The notes beneath the pieces are model-generated. The model did no database searches. It saw only the letters and a program-made list of their open reading frames with translations, and had not been told where the DNA came from. Of a stretch of DNA of 64,000 nt, positions 14,168-47,075 are shown in pieces. The stretch is from sequence record MH460460.1; one strand, given 5' to 3'. Positions within the stretch are counted from its first letter, which is position 1; each line of letters starts with the position of its first letter. A program made the position numbers and the translations under genes.

Positions 14168-14193
14168 TAGATTTTCTCCTTTTATTACTGGTT

Positions 14194-14200
14194 AAATTAG
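14194..14200 (-). promoter_or_regulatory. Candidate late promoter CTAATTT
   Basis: cACTAATTTAA lies 27 nt upstream of the PAAR start, right after a terminator. Confidence 0.55.
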
Positions 14201-14203
14201 TGG

Positions 14204-14241
14204 CAGAAACAAAAACGGGCAGCACAAAGGCCACCCGTTTT
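14204..14241 (-). terminator. Rho-independent terminator
   Basis: ACGGGTGGC-CTTTGT-GCTGCCCGT (two G-U pairs) followed by TTTTTGTTTCTG. Confidence 0.8.
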
Positions 14242-14485
14242 CGTATCAAATTTTTCATGCGGAGTTAAAAGTTGGACGCGCATAACCTCTATAGAATAAC
14301 GGCGCAGCAATCGGTTTATAGCGCTGGCAAAGAGTGTTCGCCCAATCGCATCCAATCTACACGCCGCGCCATTTGGAGAGGCGCACAAAATCCCACGTCT
14401 GAAATTTTGCTGTCCATAGTATACGCGGAGTTACCCGCAAGGCATCGCAATCAAATCTGAATTTTCGGCAAGAAAGTGTCGCTGT

Positions 14486-14638
14486 CTAACACATCCCTCG
14501 AACGTGCGCTTTGCCGTAAGCCACGGCGTAGCCAGACGCGAGCGCTTTCGGCTTGCTCGCACATTGTTTTTCAATGCCTAATCTTACTCCTTGCCAAAGC
14601 AAGATTAGTAGCGACATAAGGAGGATGAGATCTTTCAC
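14486..14638 (-). CDS. Small putative membrane peptide (50 aa, GTG start)
   Basis: TAAGGA RBS before the GTG; MKDLILLMSLLILLWQGVRLG has a hydrophobic N-terminal segment. Confidence 0.4.
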   Translation of the reverse strand: MKDLILLMSLLILLWQGVRLGIEKQCASKPKALASGYAVAYGKAHVRGMC

Positions 14639-14712
14639 TCTGAATGTTTCCTTACGTCTATTGTGACACGGTGCCACAAATTCTTTTTACAGATTAGCCA
14701 CCATAGAACCAA

Positions 14713-14820
14713 TCATTCATTTTTATTTTCCTTACCGCAATCCATAATCCACGAACGTAATTCTTCGCGAGACATTTTAGAAGGCGGTGTAAAAGTTTTG
14801 GAGTTAAGCGCTCTATCCAT
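14713..14820 (-). CDS. Small hypothetical protein (35 aa, MDRALNSKTFTPPSKMSREELRSWIMDCGKENKNE)
   Basis: Manual translation. It is in frame with the upstream gene after that gene's TGA and has no clear SD. From memory it resembles short phage proteins of the type AL.S..FT.P.G.SREE.R..I. Confidence 0.45.
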   Translation of the reverse strand: MDRALNSKTFTPPSKMSREELRSWIMDCGKENKNE

Positions 14821-14859
14821 CCGGTCGATATCAATCAGAACGACCGGATCTACAAGCGC

Positions 14860-15171
14860 TCATTTTTCACTTGCACGCATCATGCAGTCTTGCGCTTCGA
14901 GAAGTTTGCGAAGTCCCGCACTCTTCTCTGCGCTGTCAGAAATTTCTGCATCAAGCGTTTCTGCGATATGGCGAAAACATCCGGCGATTCCCATCTTTTT
15001 AAGATCGCCAGTGAACCGCTCAGGATCGAAGTAGTTCATAATCGGATTGGAATATTCTTTTTTACCGCCGCCCCAATCGCCGATTTCTTTAGGGCCACAC
15101 ATTCCAGTCACACCCGGAGTCTTACTCGGATGATCTTTATTATCGGTTATATCAATGCGTCTTTCCGACAT
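14860..15171 (-). CDS. Small helical protein resembling the Acb4 (anti-CBASS nucleotide sponge) family
   Basis: AAAGGA RBS. NPIMNYF...LDAEISDSAEKSAGLRKLLEAQDCMMRA matches the widespread phage family PIM.YF.Y.HLP...EKSAGLRKLLEAKDC.VRA. The ORF is solid; the Acb4 label is from recall. Confidence 0.6.
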   Translation of the reverse strand: MSERRIDITDNKDHPSKTPGVTGMCGPKEIGDWGGGKKEYSNPIMNYFDPERFTGDLKKMGIAGCFRHIAETLDAEISDSAEKSAGLRKLLEAQDCMMRASEK

Positions 15172-15194
15172 TTCATTTGTTCCTTTTCAGTAGG

Positions 15195-15880
15195 TAACAT
15201 CCTGCATTACGCTGTTAAGGGCAACGTAATGCAAGTTGTCTTCCCAACTTTCCCGACAAAAGATTTTCATTTCGCTTCCCGTTTCCCAACTAAAACAGGT
15301 CTAAGCGAAAACTATCTTCGAAGCCTCGCAGGAGGTCTTGCAAATACGCGATGGACGGCGTAGGCAATTTACGATCTTCGGTCTGCGGCAGTTATTTGTT
15401 AATCATCTTTCGATGACAAGAATAGGTCGTGAATTAGCTACCCACACTTTAAACTTCCTGCTAACTAAGATTCGAATACGGAAGTACCGCACGGGATATT
15501 CGAATCTAAATCCTCGTTTTGGACGATTGGCAACAGCCTGCTTGATAGCACCACCCACATGCACCGCTATCAGTATATTCACTTTACAGATTTTAAAATG
15601 AACATACGGAACCGATGAAAAAGATTTCCCGTTTATGCCCTCATACGAAAACATAAACGGCATTCTTTCTTGCTGTCTGCAACAAATCGGTTTCTCTGTC
15701 TGGAAGAGAAACAGCGATTTTCGTTTCCCCCTGTTAGGAGCGGCTTGGGAGCCTACAAGTGAAACGGCTGCCAGTGTTATATCCCCACTTTACAGATTCG
15801 TCCTCCCGCAAAAGAACTTTATGAATCCAACTGGCTAGGGTCTAAAGACAAGGCGGGGAAAAAGTAAAACCGCCTTGCCC
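15195..15880 (-). ncRNA. Candidate large structured non-coding RNA (about 690 nt), family unknown
   Basis: No credible ORF in a 736-nt gap. At least 9 stems (6-18 bp) with GAAA, UGCG and GUAU tetraloops; G-U pairs form only on the minus strand. Confidence 0.6.
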
Positions 15881-15907
15881 TAATTAATTACTATTTACAG
15901 ATTTACC

Positions 15908-17686
15908 TTAGAAAATTTTACGCTTAACCAGAGAATAATAAACTTCGAACGGAGCACCATACAAAGCTGGCCCGCGTTGAGCACGCGCTGTCACTTTGCC
16001 TGTATGAATGTTCAACGCAGTGATTTCTACCGTTGGCTGTTTCGGTCGAATAGTTTCATACACCGGAGTGTTGAATGTCGGATAATCATTGCGTAAACGT
16101 TCGATACTTTCTTCCGCTTCTTTCGACGGCTGCGGGAATTTAAAACGAATCTCAGCAGCGCGTTTACCGCGAGCGATAGTCACATAACCTTTCTTCAAAG
16201 GCACGCCGTTATACATCAGATAGGAAGAAATACGACGAGCGATACCAACCACCTGATCGTAAATCGTATCATCCATTACCTGCGCGGAAAAACGAATGCC
16301 AGTAGGTTGCTGTACCATTGCCAGACGCAAACCAGTGTTGAAATAACCTTCGTCAATCAGGCGACGGAAATAATCATACATCGCTTCGGTTTTGGATGCG
16401 ATAGCCGGAATGTGCAACGGCGGAACGTCAGCTTTCGGTTCAACAAAAGTTGGAGTCTGAACCGGAATAGACATTTTCACAACCTGCGAAACTTTATAAG
16501 TGTTTTCCAGAATCGGAGTTGTTTTGATCACAACTTTATTCTTGATTGCTTTCTTATAGTTTTCGTCAGTTGTCAGTGAGGTAAACAGACGATAATCAAC
16601 CGGGCTTGTATAGCCGCTAATGATATCGCGCACCAGCGTTTGAAGTTTTGCCTGCGTGTCAGCGAACACAACGCGACTGCGATTAGGCGTGCTCGGAGAT
16701 ACCGGGAAGAATGCACCGTAAACAGTTTTGATATTGCGCGGTGAACCTGTTCCAGTAACCTTAGTTGCGTTTTCCAGTTTCGGAAGTTTTTCAGCCTGAC
16801 CAACAGGCGCAACTTTCGGTGTACTGCGAATCGCTTTACCTTTAACGTAACTTGTCGCTTCCGGATCAACAGACAGATTACTCAGCAGATTTTTAACTGC
16901 CGAACTATCCATCCAACTCTCAATCGGAACTGCGAGGTTGTGCGCGAGATAATGTTTCTTACGACGCATCAAAACAACAGTGCCTTTAGGAATAACAGGC
17001 GACAGAATTTTTTTCTTCGTTGTTCCGACATACGCGAACGTATCAGTTTTCAGATCGGACACTTGACCGAACGGAGCGGTGAATTCAAGAGCGCCCATAA
17101 TGCTTTGCGCTGTTTCGTGACCGCGAACAATAAACTGAATGCGTGGGCTATCTTTCAGACGCAGATCGTAACGGTCTTTGTTGAGATAGGTAATCTTAAT
17201 CAGATCGCCTTTCTCAAGTTCCAGATCGTATTCATCGGAAGCATCATCAATAGCCAGTTTCTTACCAGTGTATTTGAGATACTTCGGTGCCGCACTTTCG
17301 GAACTAACATCGAGCACATCAAATACACGTTGAGAGTTTTCAGCGTACTCACGCGCCGCCAGCATTGCAGTAGCGAGGTTAAAGCTGATAGATTTTTCTT
17401 TCGGTGGAACTAACTGAACATGAACGCTACTACTTGCACTCATGAAAACAGTTTGATTATCGTCGCGAGTTCCGGCGAAGTGCATTCCAGTAAGGCGCTC
17501 TACAGCGTCAGCACTAATGCTTTCGTGTGCGATACGATCACCGGGAACAATCTCAGTGATTTCGCCACGGTGCCAAACATAGGCAGCGCGTCCATTGTGA
17601 CCAATAAAGTGATCGCCCACTTTAGAGATTGACCGTGGGATAATCCCTAAGTCAGAAATAACGCGAGAAGGTTTTTGAACAATCAT
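15908..17686 (-). CDS. Hypothetical protein (592 aa) with an internal copy of the recurrent YxxYxG domain
   Basis: Long ORF with AAGGA RBS; segment KYLKYTGKK...LEKGDLIKI resembles domains in three other genes. Confidence 0.7.
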   Translation of the reverse strand: MIVQKPSRVISDLGIIPRSISKVGDHFIGHNGRAAYVWHRGEITEIVPGDRIAHESISADAVERLTGMHFAGTRDDNQTVFMSASSSVHVQLVPPKEKSISFNLATAMLAAREYAENSQRVFDVLDVSSESAAPKYLKYTGKKLAIDDASDEYDLELEKGDLIKITYLNKDRYDLRLKDSPRIQFIVRGHETAQSIMGALEFTAPFGQVSDLKTDTFAYVGTTKKKILSPVIPKGTVVLMRRKKHYLAHNLAVPIESWMDSSAVKNLLSNLSVDPEATSYVKGKAIRSTPKVAPVGQAEKLPKLENATKVTGTGSPRNIKTVYGAFFPVSPSTPNRSRVVFADTQAKLQTLVRDIISGYTSPVDYRLFTSLTTDENYKKAIKNKVVIKTTPILENTYKVSQVVKMSIPVQTPTFVEPKADVPPLHIPAIASKTEAMYDYFRRLIDEGYFNTGLRLAMVQQPTGIRFSAQVMDDTIYDQVVGIARRISSYLMYNGVPLKKGYVTIARGKRAAEIRFKFPQPSKEAEESIERLRNDYPTFNTPVYETIRPKQPTVEITALNIHTGKVTARAQRGPALYGAPFEVYYSLVKRKIF

Positions 17687-43243: not shown

Positions 43244-44161
43244 TTAGATTTGAATGTTACCAGAGTCCGTCCAGCGAATGCCATAACGTTCTACAACCGT
43301 GAATTCGATTTCAGTAAACTTATTGAGATCGAGTTGACGGAAAGTTTTCGTAGGATCAGCAGGAAGCGGAGTTTGTTTTGTTTCAGTATACAGGTTGAGT
43401 TTAATCACAACATCGCCAGCAAGATGTTGTGGCTTGAATGTCTGCGCAGTGTCTTCCAACAAACCGCTCGCGAGAATATCGTCAAAGAAAGTATTGACGG
43501 TCATCGACAAGCCGCTATTTAGAATAGTTGGCGCGAATGCTAAAACTTGATCATAGAACGAACGGTTCCACGATGTATTGCCAATTAGCGTTCGCTGTTT
43601 CTTAATGCGCGTAATCTTCCCGTCTTTGACTTCGCGATATTGATCGTAATACCACGAAGCATAAACCATATGAACAGGAGGAAGATTCATTTCAGAAAAA
43701 TCAAACGCAGGCGCTACAACCATACGATGTTGAGTGCGATCAATATTGCGACGGAAAACATTCAACGAATATTCGTAACCGCGACGGCAATTGATTGTCA
43801 GATTGCTAACAACTGATTGCTGATAGCCATTAGTAACGGCATACGCAAAACAATCTTGCCCAACGAAACCAGCGAGCGGCGTATAGATAAAACTCTCGCC
43901 ATCAACGGAAAGTTTTACGGAGCCGTGTATAGGTTGACTGATAGGAATTAAAGTTAATCGCCATCCACGCTGAACAGGAACTTTATCGAGAACCCCCTCG
44001 CTAGGGGATTCCGATGTTTTAAAATCGCGTGCGCCCTGAATCATAATAGAGCGCAGCGGAATTTCAAAGTCTACGTTGTTCGGCGTTTCAAGCGTGAGAG
44101 CAGGTGCTACAGGAACATCATTGCGCCAGTAGTCTACAACACACGGTTTTGAAATCATCAC
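43244..44161 (-). CDS. Structural-type protein with an Ig/cadherin-like (Big_9 type) domain
   Basis: QPIHGSVKLSVDGESFIYTPLAGFVGQDCFAYAVTNG. Confidence 0.65.
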   Translation of the reverse strand: MMISKPCVVDYWRNDVPVAPALTLETPNNVDFEIPLRSIMIQGARDFKTSESPSEGVLDKVPVQRGWRLTLIPISQPIHGSVKLSVDGESFIYTPLAGFVGQDCFAYAVTNGYQQSVVSNLTINCRRGYEYSLNVFRRNIDRTQHRMVVAPAFDFSEMNLPPVHMVYASWYYDQYREVKDGKITRIKKQRTLIGNTSWNRSFYDQVLAFAPTILNSGLSMTVNTFFDDILASGLLEDTAQTFKPQHLAGDVVIKLNLYTETKQTPLPADPTKTFRQLDLNKFTEIEFTVVERYGIRWTDSGNIQI

Positions 44162-46128
44162 GTCACCTTGTATTTCTTTTTAAACTGATCGATGGTGTAA
44201 ATCGGAATGCCCTTGTCCATCGCTTTCTGAACTTTGCTACTACCGCTTCCCGGATCTTTCGCAATCAGAACAGTAGTGTCTGCCTTCATACTATCCGATG
44301 CGGTGCCGCCCAATTCAACGATACGCGCTTTCAAGTCTGCATCACGCACGCCAGTAAATGCTACGTTAACGCCATTCAGTTTACTGCTTTTCACCACAAC
44401 TTTCTTCGGAGCCTTCAACTTGATGCCAATTTCTTGCGCCAAATCGTAAGCATTAATACAAGCATTAGAAATCTTAGGTGCGAGAGATTTAATGCCATGA
44501 ATGCCGCTAATGAGTTCGGTCAAATCAGAACGACGTTTAAGCAGTTTCTGGATATCAGGAATTTCATCAACAACTTTATCGAATGAAGTGTTTGCACCAC
44601 GCATGAAATACGGAGCACACGCTTTAAGCCACACGTTCAATTCGATTCCTGAAAGAATTGTTTTGTTGTGCTTCGCGATCTGTTTGCCGCGAGCGTCACC
44701 CAAAATCCCACGTAACGTAGGCAGACCGCAAAGAATGAGTGACTTAGGATCTTTGATTCCGCTTTCCATCAGCAGATTCGCAGTCTTGTCTCCAGCGTTA
44801 GAATATCCCGCAGCAGCCATGAAACTCTCAAGAAGTTTTGCATCAGCAGTAGCAGATTTTTTCTTAACGCGAAACTCAACGCCTTCCATTGTATACGGAA
44901 CATCAGGAAGTTTCGCTTTCTTCGCAGGCCGCACGATTTCTTGAATGTACGGAATAACTTTGTTACTACGCACAAGTTTTACTTTCGCGCCGATGCCCAA
45001 CGGACGTTTTTCATGAGGCGGTTTCTGTCCTTTCTTCGTTGGTTTCAGATAGCCATGCTCAATATAATATCCGTTGTGACCATTAGCGCGATTGATCGTA
45101 ATGCCACCGGGAACAACTACAGGTTCCACAATAACAACCGGAGCAAGCACGCCGTATTTTGTTTCCTGATAAACGATATCTTTCACCGTAGTAATAACGC
45201 TATCCGCACTCGTATTCATTTTGAATTTGAATTCGTGTTTAGGATTGCTGCCAGTAGACTTAGGAGAAGGAATGTTATCGGACACCACAAGGCCATCCAA
45301 TTCATATTTGGATTTGCGCATACGGTCTTCGATCATCGTTACCAATTGTTCTTCGGTAAGATCATCAAATGGCCCAAAGTGGCGAACCACAGTGAAGCCG
45401 TATTGTTTCAGCAGTTTGAATTGATCGCTTTTCTTTTTAGTTGCAGCGCTGCCGCCGATTATACCGAAACAAACGAGATCGATATGTTTGATTTCTTTCG
45501 GCGATTCAAAGCGTCGCATAAGCCCAACAGAAGCCGGACGAGCAGAAGTATACTCATAATCGCCCGGAGCATCTTTGTGAAGCGTTGCCATAAATTTCTT
45601 CTGACTGATTAGCGCCTCGCAACGAACAATAAAACGTTCTTTCGTTGGAATCTTTTTCGGGATGTTGAACGAAGCCAAATGACGCGTAACGTCTTTGCCT
45701 TTCATACTATCGCCGCGAGTGTACGCAGCAACAGGAACACCCTTTTCATAAATCAACTCAATGCTTTGACCGTCCAACTTATCACTAACGATCTTGCTGT
45801 TACCGTTACCCAAATGTTTCGCGAGCGCAGGTGAAGAAAGTTTCAGTTGGTTCAGGCTTGCCATTGGAACCGGAAGCGGAACATCACTGTCATCGTGCGA
45901 GCCGATCTTTTTAGCCAGCGTAGACTTAGGCCAGCGCTCAGAAATATAATCGCGAATCGTGTCGTAAATGGTATCATCAACAAGCGGCTGTCCTTCATCG
46001 TATGCGTCATCGAAAGCATTGATGAGTTTTTTCGCCTGCGTCAGATTAAGAGTCTCCATTACTTTGATAGGATTCTTTTCTAATCGTTTTAGGCTTATGC
46101 TGGCTGAAATACTTTTGAATTCAGTCAT
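44158..46128 (-). CDS. ligA: NAD-dependent DNA ligase
   Basis: Domain Ia YDEGQPLVDDTIYD, motif I SDKLDG, TRGD, YELDGLVV, OB fold and C-terminal BRCT (VAFTGVRD...VLIAKDPGSGSSKVQKA). Confidence 0.95.
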   Translation of the reverse strand: MTEFKSISASISLKRLEKNPIKVMETLNLTQAKKLINAFDDAYDEGQPLVDDTIYDTIRDYISERWPKSTLAKKIGSHDDSDVPLPVPMASLNQLKLSSPALAKHLGNGNSKIVSDKLDGQSIELIYEKGVPVAAYTRGDSMKGKDVTRHLASFNIPKKIPTKERFIVRCEALISQKKFMATLHKDAPGDYEYTSARPASVGLMRRFESPKEIKHIDLVCFGIIGGSAATKKKSDQFKLLKQYGFTVVRHFGPFDDLTEEQLVTMIEDRMRKSKYELDGLVVSDNIPSPKSTGSNPKHEFKFKMNTSADSVITTVKDIVYQETKYGVLAPVVIVEPVVVPGGITINRANGHNGYYIEHGYLKPTKKGQKPPHEKRPLGIGAKVKLVRSNKVIPYIQEIVRPAKKAKLPDVPYTMEGVEFRVKKKSATADAKLLESFMAAAGYSNAGDKTANLLMESGIKDPKSLILCGLPTLRGILGDARGKQIAKHNKTILSGIELNVWLKACAPYFMRGANTSFDKVVDEIPDIQKLLKRRSDLTELISGIHGIKSLAPKISNACINAYDLAQEIGIKLKAPKKVVVKSSKLNGVNVAFTGVRDADLKARIVELGGTASDSMKADTTVLIAKDPGSGSSKVQKAMDKGIPIYTIDQFKKKYKVT

Positions 46129-46151: not shown

Positions 46152-47075
46152 TTAAATATTTACAGTTTCAGCGATGCGATTCGCAATAAAATCAGGAACC
46201 GCATTCATCGTAAGACCATTGCGTTTTGCCAACATGATAAAGGCTTCCGCATATTTCAATTGCTGACTCCCAACACCACCAAATTGACGAGCGTTGAGCA
46301 GGCGGCGCGACAATTCTGACACGACTGTTTGACGTGTACGGAAACCGGAGTTAATGCTTCGCAGCATTTGAAAATACTTGTGAACATCGGATTTGATAGA
46401 GAAAGTTTTGATGCCACTGAAATCTTTTCGAATAGCAGCATGGAGCAGAACTAAGAAAGGATATAAATCTTCTTTCTGTCTGGCTTCCTTTTCTTTTTCA
46501 ATGTCCTTGATAAAATCAGGACGGTTATCAGGTTCCGGAGTTTCCTTGCCATTCAATGTGGAAGTGATTTCGTTAAAAAGCGAAATGCGTTTGGTCGGAC
46601 GGCGTGACAGCATATCTTTCTTGCTGCCGTAAAAGTAAACCGGAATATTTCTTTTGCGAGCCTGCAAAGCAATGCCGCGAAAATACATCCCATTACTTTT
46701 AATTCGCGCTTCTTCTTTCGTTCCAACGTTGCAGTGAATCTCTTTAACGATACTGATATCAATGTCCGGCTTGTCGCTGATAATGCGTTCTTCGGATTCA
46801 GAGTAATCAGCACCGTTCTGCCAGAAATCGACAGGCACAACTTTAAAGCGTGACCGGATTTTATTTGCATCCAAAACAAACAAAACTTCCGATCCGCCAT
46901 TCGTTCTTATCGCGAAAATATTACTCAGCGTGCGGGTAGTGGAAAGGAAGAAGAGTCTGTTTTGAGAGAACTCTTCTTCCGCATCGCTTCCGGAGGCAAT
47001 GCTCAAATGAAATTTTCCACTTCCCACAATACTCAGCGCGTTTTTCGGCGAAGTAAAGTGGAAGAGTGTATTCAT
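46152..47075 (-). CDS. ADP-ribosyltransferase-like protein, paralog A
   Basis: LFHFT (beta1 His), FLSTTR (S-T-T) and SESEERI (E-x-E) motifs. Confidence 0.5.
   Translation of the reverse strand: MNTLFHFTSPKNALSIVGSGKFHLSIASGSDAEEEFSQNRLFFLSTTRTLSNIFAIRTNGGSEVLFVLDANKIRSRFKVVPVDFWQNGADYSESEERIISDKPDIDISIVKEIHCNVGTKEEARIKSNGMYFRGIALQARKRNIPVYFYGSKKDMLSRRPTKRISLFNEITSTLNGKETPEPDNRPDFIKDIEKEKEARQKEDLYPFLVLLHAAIRKDFSGIKTFSIKSDVHKYFQMLRSINSGFRTRQTVVSELSRRLLNARQFGGVGSQQLKYAEAFIMLAKRNGLTMNAVPDFIANRIAETVNI

Follow-up and report, generated by a model that had tools for sequence, protein, structure and literature searches.

Among the large structured RNAs that phages encode, GOLLD and ROOL provide the background for the element considered here: a ROOL member is 659 nt long, many GOLLD members exceed 800 nt, and both frequently adjoin tRNA islands (PMC12286853). 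The element lies in a 64-kb window (the whole stretch of 64,000 nt that was analysed, whose numbering is used throughout) of Dickeya phage vB_DsoM_JA13 (MH460460; 100% identity), a 254-kb jumbo phage of the genus Salmondvirus, in which a gap of 736 nt free of open reading frames (ORFs; 15172-15907) separates the genes JA13_105 and JA13_104. Large, complex-folded RNAs are rare in bacteria and phages, and to our knowledge each new class of large RNA has so far been a ribozyme, a sensor, the core of a ribonucleoprotein or, recently, an RNA-only cage. We consider it very probable that the minus strand of the gap encodes RNA modules of complex fold that follow one another head to tail and constitute a new family. 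Two complete modules and one decayed module are present in JA13 and the array is kept at the same place in about twenty related phages, and we therefore regard it as a new large structured RNA; it adds a new family to the known kind “large structured phage RNA”, and its architecture of tandem paralogues is unusual. The fold itself is conserved, strand-specific, covarying and multi-domain.

The relatives were collected with the 592-aa protein encoded by JA13_105 as anchor. The same gene order was found in 57 deposited phages (of Erwinia, Dickeya and Yersinia), 24 IMG/VR contigs and 5 metagenome contigs, and in every relative whose contig reaches the PAAR gene the distance from the 592-aa gene to the PAAR gene is 1.3-2.5 kb. 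The first 0.7-1.1 kb of that interval (up to about 1.25 kb in the metagenomic phage L010) holds no annotated or conserved gene, and about 20 such stretches are mutually distinct. Module arrays of 0.7-1.1 kb occupy this site in Salmondvirus, Yoloswagvirus, Alexandravirus, Sasquatchvirus, a Yersinia phage and metagenomes (five phage lineages). A nucleotide search matched the region in the JA phages only, JA29 being the sole diverged copy (~85%); L010 and a second metagenomic phage, L009, whose anchor proteins are 69% identical to that of JA13, are useful intermediates. A metagenome scan for more relatives yielded five loci and one new sequence (L034), the two loci that extend past the 592-aa gene and were not plainly in the collection already being duplicates. 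When IMG/VR was scanned with a 19-base motif pattern, matches were confined to this phage clade, and the same pattern gave a single match in 596 Gb of bacterial genomes (in Actinoplanes), which we take for chance, a few such matches being expected by our estimate. The host range observed so far is a single clade of Enterobacterales jumbo phages.

The original prediction, made from the letters of the window, saw one ornate RNA of about 690 nt at 15195-15880. What the gap holds is not one fold; it is a tandem array of paralogous copies of one module of about 250-300 nt, which in JA13 reads X, a decayed A, and B. With the relatives read side by side, the same short motifs recur two to four times per locus in a fixed order, and there are two to four module copies per locus in the relatives, as compared to two whole copies (X and B) and one decayed copy (A) in JA13; the AD1 group and Y3 have three whole copies, the first of which is the counterpart of X. 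Each module is organized around a core helix, in which a 5' strand (GCGGU in module B of JA13) pairs with a 3' strand that is followed by AG, and whose fifth pair varies among A-U, U-A, G-C and U-G between copies. Inside the core helix are a directly nested hairpin and then a conserved single-stranded junction; onward follow a short helix opening a three-way junction, one arm of which is variable, then an arm that bears a conserved motif, then a small hairpin. A long hairpin closes the module at its 3' end, and most copies have in its loop either of two related 7-base sequences. The loop of the nested hairpin is paired by a strand that lies upstream of the core helix, so that the core is either a pseudoknot or a pair of alternative folds. 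A search by eye for loop-to-junction kissing, in which the conserved 3' hairpin loop was compared with the junction, gave no convincing complementarity.

The pairings that define this fold have been maintained by compensatory change, well above what slid and shuffled controls give. In the second module of the AD1 type (12 phages, hand-written structure) 92.7% of cells are paired and 36 of the 59 pairs have changed on both sides; when the 3' partner was slid by 1-3 columns, 33-39% of cells were paired and 5-10 pairs were double-changed, while column shuffles gave 18.3±2.3 compensatory pairs, with 0 of 500 reaching the observed 36. For the third AD1-type module, the core together with the pseudoknot helix is 91.9% paired, with compensatory changes in 9 of 21 pairs. 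The pseudoknot helix taken singly shows compensatory change in two AD1-type classes, at 4 of 7 pairs in one and 6 of 10 in the other; its support comes from three class-specific alignments, the helix being out of register in the alignment made by a covariance model. In the four-phage alignments of the JA13 modules, 92.5% of cells are paired in module B, where 15 of 84 pairs are compensatory (1-5 when slid), and 87.1% in module X, where 18 of 62 are (1-8 when slid).

MAFFT alignments of all copies were too badly registered for pair counting, and covariance models were therefore used instead. A model of the 5' core that was built from one module class and iterated twice finds the other classes as well, and the covariance-model search of the relatives gave 33 matches in 19 loci (192 kb), all of them on the sense strand and all inside the gap. 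Across 31 distinct copies, 96.7% of the family-wide core cells are paired and 84 cells are double-changed, as compared to 22.8±3.8 in shuffled and 3-11 in slid controls. Searched with filters off over the whole 64-kb window, the model R3 returned as its two best matches 15759-15861 (minus strand, E 8e-4) and 15374-15594 (minus strand, E 4e-3), and nothing else below E 0.5. Modules X and B of JA13 both have the core helix, nested hairpin and junction of the family, and in B the upstream strand pairs into the loop of the nested hairpin.

Several lines of evidence bear on the strand and on the alternative that the gap is coding or acts as DNA. The minimum free energy (MFE) of the gap lies far below that of shuffled sequences on the minus strand (z-score -4.67) and does so alike on the plus strand (-4.56; 20 shuffles each), so that the z-score alone is silent on strand and on RNA. 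The helices of three MAFFT alignments contain G·U and A·C cells in ratios of 34:4, 88:9 and 21:9, from structures which, we note, were derived on the minus strand; with G·U so far above A·C, the pairing works as minus-strand RNA and much less on the other strand. About a dozen G-U pairs had been counted originally; the preference for the minus strand stands, and the number in the curated JA13 structure is somewhat lower (9 of 146 pairs) because fewer stems were counted. Together, the covariation, the ratio of G·U to A·C and the restriction of model matches to one strand bear out the claim of a structured non-coding RNA on the minus strand. Translation of the ORF at 15403-15663, which had been named as a possibility, finds no support from conservation: that ORF and two more in the gap (15338-15601 and 15635-15838, plus strand) are not kept in the relatives, with only broken, frame-shifting or insignificant matches in JA29, L009 and L010, while gene 104, used as a control, was detected at 1e-16. 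Nor does the locus have the composition of a replication origin, GC staying at 0.44-0.46 and the skew unchanged across it, with no iterons or tandem repeats beyond a short motif of 13-18 bases.

The expectation that no known family would be recognized also held. The covariance models of Rfam 15 gave no match at gathering score in the window or in 13 relatives, those of GOLLD, ROOL, group I and group II introns, 6S, riboswitches and self-cleaving ribozymes included. Under permissive filters over the locus the search returned four matches only, at E 2.5-8.1, to unrelated small RNAs of eukaryotes or enterobacteria, and all four lay outside the module array. ARAGORN found no gene for a tRNA or transfer-messenger RNA (tmRNA) in the window, and our literature search found no paper describing an RNA at this locus.

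All stems that the original prediction listed are present on the minus strand, and most are kept in the relatives through compensatory changes; they can now be assigned to the parts of the array, all of which lie on that strand. The RNA begins with a 5' hairpin of 10 bp (15847-15879) that is identical in JA29; L009 and L010 have at this place a hairpin whose sequence is different, and the stem is 76% paired when the four phages are taken together. Module X (15629-15846), the first complete copy, accounts for the best match of R3 in the window, and an X-type first module is also found in the AD1 group. The closing helix GCCAGU/ACUGGC of X (15830-15835 with 15770-15775) is 100% paired with one compensatory pair, and its nested hairpin GGAUUC/GAAUCU (15823-15828 with 15794-15799) is 100% paired and invariant; four of the six pairs of the arm CGUUUC/GAAACG (15761-15766 with 15722-15727) are compensatory, as are five of the 13 pairs of the 3' hairpin (15629-15660), and the stem at 15686-15718 is 77% paired. 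The order of parts in X is thus closing helix, nested hairpin, junction, this arm, further arms and 3' hairpin. The pseudoknot helix of X is a candidate only, read from the sequence.

Between X and A lies a copy of a junction-like or promoter-like motif (15575-15596), conserved in JA29, L009 and L010, which may be either a promoter or an RNA motif. Module A, the decayed middle copy (15527-15574), has suffered two deletions relative to JA29 and L010, where it is whole: in the JA13-JA29 alignment the ~270 extra bases of JA29 amount to one full module that repeats motifs found further downstream, and the models R2 and R3 both detect module A in JA29 (L008) and L010. The 5' pairing strand alone remains in JA13, and the R3 model joins that strand to module B. 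The stem UGAUAGC/GCUAUCA (15543-15572) of the original prediction belongs here; it is present in JA13 and only there, an unconserved by-product of the decay of the middle module.

Module B (15203-15506), the last complete copy, takes its coordinates from the curated structure. Its pseudoknot helix (15497-15506 with 15469-15478), previously seen as an 11-bp stem, is 90% paired over 10 pairs and 100% over the 7 inner ones. It is followed by the core helix (15486-15490 with 15385-15389), the nested hairpin (15480-15485 with 15453-15458), a hairpin inserted in the junction (15403-15416), the arms of the three-way junction (15319-15383), the arm with the conserved motif (15270-15310), the small hairpin (15234-15249) and the long 3' hairpin (15203-15233), which is 98% paired and whose orthologue in the AD1 group is compensatory in 8 of 13 pairs.

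With regard to transcription, in every lineage the 592-aa gene is followed, right behind its stop codon, by a promoter-like motif of 19 bases (15886-15904, minus strand, in JA13). The 9-base core of this motif, ATCTGTAAA, occurs five times in the window against 0.65 expected, four of the five within 14686-15902. In the loci of all fetched relatives an 11-base form of the motif is restricted to the sense strand, where it follows the 592-aa gene, precedes a small membrane ORF, or falls within the last part of the 592-aa gene itself; in JA13 a second promoter-like motif (14678-14696, minus strand) precedes the small membrane ORF at 14486-14677. In the AD1 group the motif falls within an inverted repeat, and in Yoloswag a hairpin resembling an intrinsic terminator precedes it. 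A phage-encoded sigma-70-like factor has been reported in the wider phage group (PMC7412058) and would fit a phage-specific promoter, the motif being a putative one. Downstream, a terminator-like hairpin with a U-run (14206-14247, minus strand; inverted repeat I2) lies just upstream of the PAAR gene and is the probable end of a transcription unit starting at 15904. The terminator-pattern scan did not list this hairpin, which was thus identified by reading the sequence; distant Erwinia phages match it over 36-41 bases with 87.5-94% identity, and Yoloswag has at the same place a hairpin whose stem differs on both sides. Based on the motif copies, the small membrane ORF and the conserved terminator-like hairpin, we read 15904 to about 14200 as one unit, in which the promoter-like motif would be followed by the RNA array, then by a slot with varying small accessory genes, then by the small membrane protein and finally by the terminator.

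Further copies of the motif were seen in passing. Phages of the Alexandravirus type have an extra 11-base copy inside the 592-aa gene, in its 3' part some 200 bases short of the stop (6557-6567 in L005; also in L013-L027 and others). A core variant, CTGTAAATA, which comprises the motif core from its third base on, has one other minus-strand copy in the window (46156-46164); this overlaps the end of the preceding gene and is ~30 bases upstream of the start of a putative DNA ligase gene (44158-46128).

As to what such an array might do, we tentatively favour, at a little short of an even chance, a trans-acting RNA of multivalent binding capacity, whether a scaffold, a decoy or a self-assembling particle. 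The transcript would act as an RNA in its own right, in each module the conserved nucleotides of junction and loop would form a surface to which a protein, a small ligand or a further module could bind, and the tandem copies would raise the valency. Action in trans is preferred because the downstream gene differs by lineage (in the AD1 group and Y3 only the small membrane ORF follows), because the module types X and B are each kept across genera, and because copy number varies among close relatives without loss of the phage. With regard to selection, the modules are 90-92% identical between JA13 and JA29, which equals or exceeds the 80-91% of five nearby genes.

A number of points weigh against the foregoing account of the RNA and its role. 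The array is known from sequence alone, and transcription from the motif at 15904 is presumed from that same source; a sigma-70 pattern scan listed no promoter inside the gap and a single weak match at 14461-14488. The pseudoknot helix and the core helices may be alternatives that do not coexist. The alignments of the JA13 group comprise only four distinct sequences, and the model-made alignment leans towards its own structure, a bias of which the slid controls and the MAFFT-based counts are free. The gene neighbourhood suggests no binding partner; the 592-aa protein of JA13_105 has no informative match in the PDB or NCBIfam. Finally, no terminator intervenes between the last module and the ribosome-binding site of the next ORF, which the module always adjoins, an arrangement that suits a cis-acting leader equally well.

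Such a leader is the main rival to a trans-acting RNA, and we consider it possible, if on the unlikely side. The downstream message would encode first gene 104 in JA13, or other small genes elsewhere, and then the small membrane protein; the array would be its long structured 5' untranslated region and would serve either as a series of tandem sensor domains, riboswitch-like or protein-responsive, or as a stabilizing 5' structure that determines how strongly the message is expressed. Tandem aptamers of one class are known in riboswitches, and the position of the array is suggestive: whatever gene follows, a few tens of bases separate the end of the last module from the next start codon (JA13, JA29, L009, L010, Yoloswag, the Yersinia phage, AD1 and Y3), and in JA13 this linker (15172-15202, minus strand), as can be read in the sequence itself, includes the ribosome-binding site of gene 104. 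The upstream hairpin and the core helices, be they exclusive or pseudoknotted, both covary, as would be expected of a conformational switch. Among the two terminator-like hairpins that a pattern scan flagged inside module X is its 3' hairpin, which is followed by a U-run; however, this U-run is found only in JA13 and JA29 and is not conserved in L009 or L010, and none follows the 3' hairpin of any other module. The gene that follows the array also changes from lineage to lineage, so that a constant downstream gene class, like a conserved expression platform, is missing across lineages even though the abutment on the start codon is conserved. Moreover, at 0.7-1.1 kb in three diverged domains of 250-300 nt, the array is far larger than any leader we know of.

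Alternatively, the RNA might act on the transcription machinery, either through processive antitermination past the terminator that precedes the PAAR/baseplate genes or as a decoy that mimics the promoter-like motif for a phage sigma factor. We hold this to be improbable. The array does lie directly downstream of the promoter-like motif and upstream of the conserved terminator-like hairpin that precedes a long structural operon, the X-type junction shares the first nine bases of the motif, and the reported sigma-70-like factor would offer a target. Yet those nine bases are confined to X-type modules and the spacer motif, the other modules being without them, the antitermination RNAs known to us are about one tenth the size of the array, and there is no Rfam match to 6S or a similar family; the reading is inferential throughout.

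Less probable still is the proposal of the original prediction that the RNA acts with the adjacent gene, taken there for an Acb4-like sponge, as a counter-defence module in which an RNA decoy or sponge would cooperate with a protein sponge. Decoy RNAs directed against host immunity exist, and the slot after the array holds differing small accessory genes, as variable accessory loci do. The identification of gene 104, however, was not supported. JA13_104 (14860-15171, minus strand; 103 aa) is a neighbour outside the RNA and is best described as an accessory gene without assigned function: it belongs to no Pfam or NCBIfam family and matches only PHROGs of no known function, and its homologues are hypothetical proteins of ~62 aa in Morganellaceae and other genomes, with no defence-related name in any source. 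A phmmer search against the PDB gave no match at E<=1, and its AlphaFold model (predicted local distance difference test score, pLDDT, 70.7), a disordered N-terminus and a helical hairpin, found nothing in the PDB by Foldseek at E<=0.001 (best E 1.6). Lacking likeness in sequence or fold to a solved structure, gene 104 was rejected as an Acb4-type or other sponge. Cooperation between it and the RNA fails as well, because most RNA-carrying phages are without the gene: in L009, the AD1 group and Y3 the locus carries the RNA but yielded no homologue, the slot of the Yersinia phage falling outside this search as the record is cut there. The RNA, for its part, resembles neither CRISPR repeats nor tRNAs nor any Rfam family.

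Gene 104 has some features of its own. Its conserved part is the C-terminal 60 residues, to which free-standing 62-aa homologues in Providencia, Morganella, Proteus and Pseudomonas correspond, with a nearly invariant stretch of 16 residues, and an Alteromonas podophage shows weak nucleotide similarity to the same C-terminal part.

That the stems are incidental to a DNA-level element (an origin, packaging site or operator array) or to decayed coding sequence is hardly credible. In its favour are MFE z-scores about as low on one strand as on the other, a Yersinia phage record that is opened within the locus, and the place of the AD1-group promoter-like motif in an inverted repeat; against it speak the excess of G·U over A·C, the compensatory changes that preserve pairing as sequence changes, the one-strandedness of all model matches, the flat GC and skew without iterons, and the lack of conservation of the ORFs where a control gene is detected.

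The Yersinia phage in question, fHe-Yen9-02 (end of L004, and L046), has a linear record that was opened immediately downstream of an RNA module, and the locus resumes at the other end of the record; a genome end at this place was considered and rejected, since the record is merely cut open there and the locus continues at its other end. Its short annotated ORFs lie four on one side of the cut and three on the other, and the three that fall inside the RNA array are probably not genes.

All genes flanking the gap of JA13 are on the minus strand, and the array is co-oriented with them. JA13_105 (15908-17686, minus strand; 592 aa), the upstream neighbour of the array, has a recognizable KMPT-N domain alone, and its product was rejected as a partner of the RNA for want of an informative match. 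Downstream, another unannotated stretch (14168-14859) separates gene 104 from the PAAR spike gene. It contains the small membrane ORF (14486-14677, minus strand), which is unannotated in JA13, encodes 63 aa with a hydrophobic N-terminus, has a good ribosome-binding site and is conserved in L009, L010, Yoloswag (annotated there as gp109), AD1 and Y3. The interval between the array and this ORF (14678-15171) has the appearance of a variable accessory-gene slot, its small genes differing between phages; it was compared in L003, L009, L010, L012 and L029 and is empty in the AD1 group and Y3. The ~240 nt between the small ORF and the terminator-like hairpin (about 14250-14485) are likewise unannotated and might hold further structure. 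A BLAST search with 14168-15907 as query also showed a second matching place in the genomes of JA13, JA33, JA11, AD1 and pEa_SNUABM_2 (records MH460460, MH460462, MH389777, NC_048077, MH460463, NC_048054, MZ443786 and NC_061443).

Returning to a trans-acting array, a bolder version of it can be envisaged, namely that the whole transcript of 0.7-1.1 kb is one RNA of three anciently triplicated, pseudoknotted domains which would form a pseudo-symmetric particle within or between chains and serve as an RNA-only scaffold or a sponge of high valency for a host factor. This is speculative and we think it rather unlikely; if true, no giant “ornate” RNA built by internal repetition, and none from Enterobacterales phages, would have preceded it. 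The present data already make this class of RNA an attractive subject: about twenty genomes provide covariation support, the hosts have relatives among the standard laboratory enterobacteria, the size of the RNA allows transcription and probing module by module, and its diverged tandem copies of one fold come with natural variants one copy short. What such RNAs bind, and whether they assemble, thereby becomes directly testable. The annotation of an apparently “empty” stretch of 0.7-1.5 kb is also corrected in more than 50 deposited phage genomes.

Several known systems invite comparison with the array. The packaging RNA of phi29 is likewise a structured RNA encoded by a phage, in its case an RNA part of a phage machine, and the array has its locus among virion genes; there is no similarity between the two, and the modules of the array are larger than the packaging RNA. 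RNAs of the CsrB/RsmB type and 6S RNA share with the array the gain of valency by repetition and possibly the logic of a decoy, the X junction resembling the putative promoter motif; in contrast to the CsrB/RsmB type, whose unit is a short hairpin, the unit of the array is a complex fold, without an Rfam match. Tandem riboswitch aptamers, of which the two-aptamer glycine riboswitch is a familiar example, resemble it in placing repeated homologous domains upstream of a coding sequence, in their conserved junction nucleotides and in their possible alternative pairings, whereas the array has three modules of 250-300 nt, no conserved downstream gene or expression platform, and no ligand that suggests itself. 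The nearest known systems are GOLLD and ROOL, which like the array are phage-encoded, large, multi-helix and pseudoknotted, of similar size, with conserved unpaired nucleotides and loops and no known function. They match it in neither sequence nor structure, and the array has no tRNA genes in its window; above all, GOLLD and ROOL are each one non-repetitive chain, whereas the array consists of two to four diverged tandem copies of one module.

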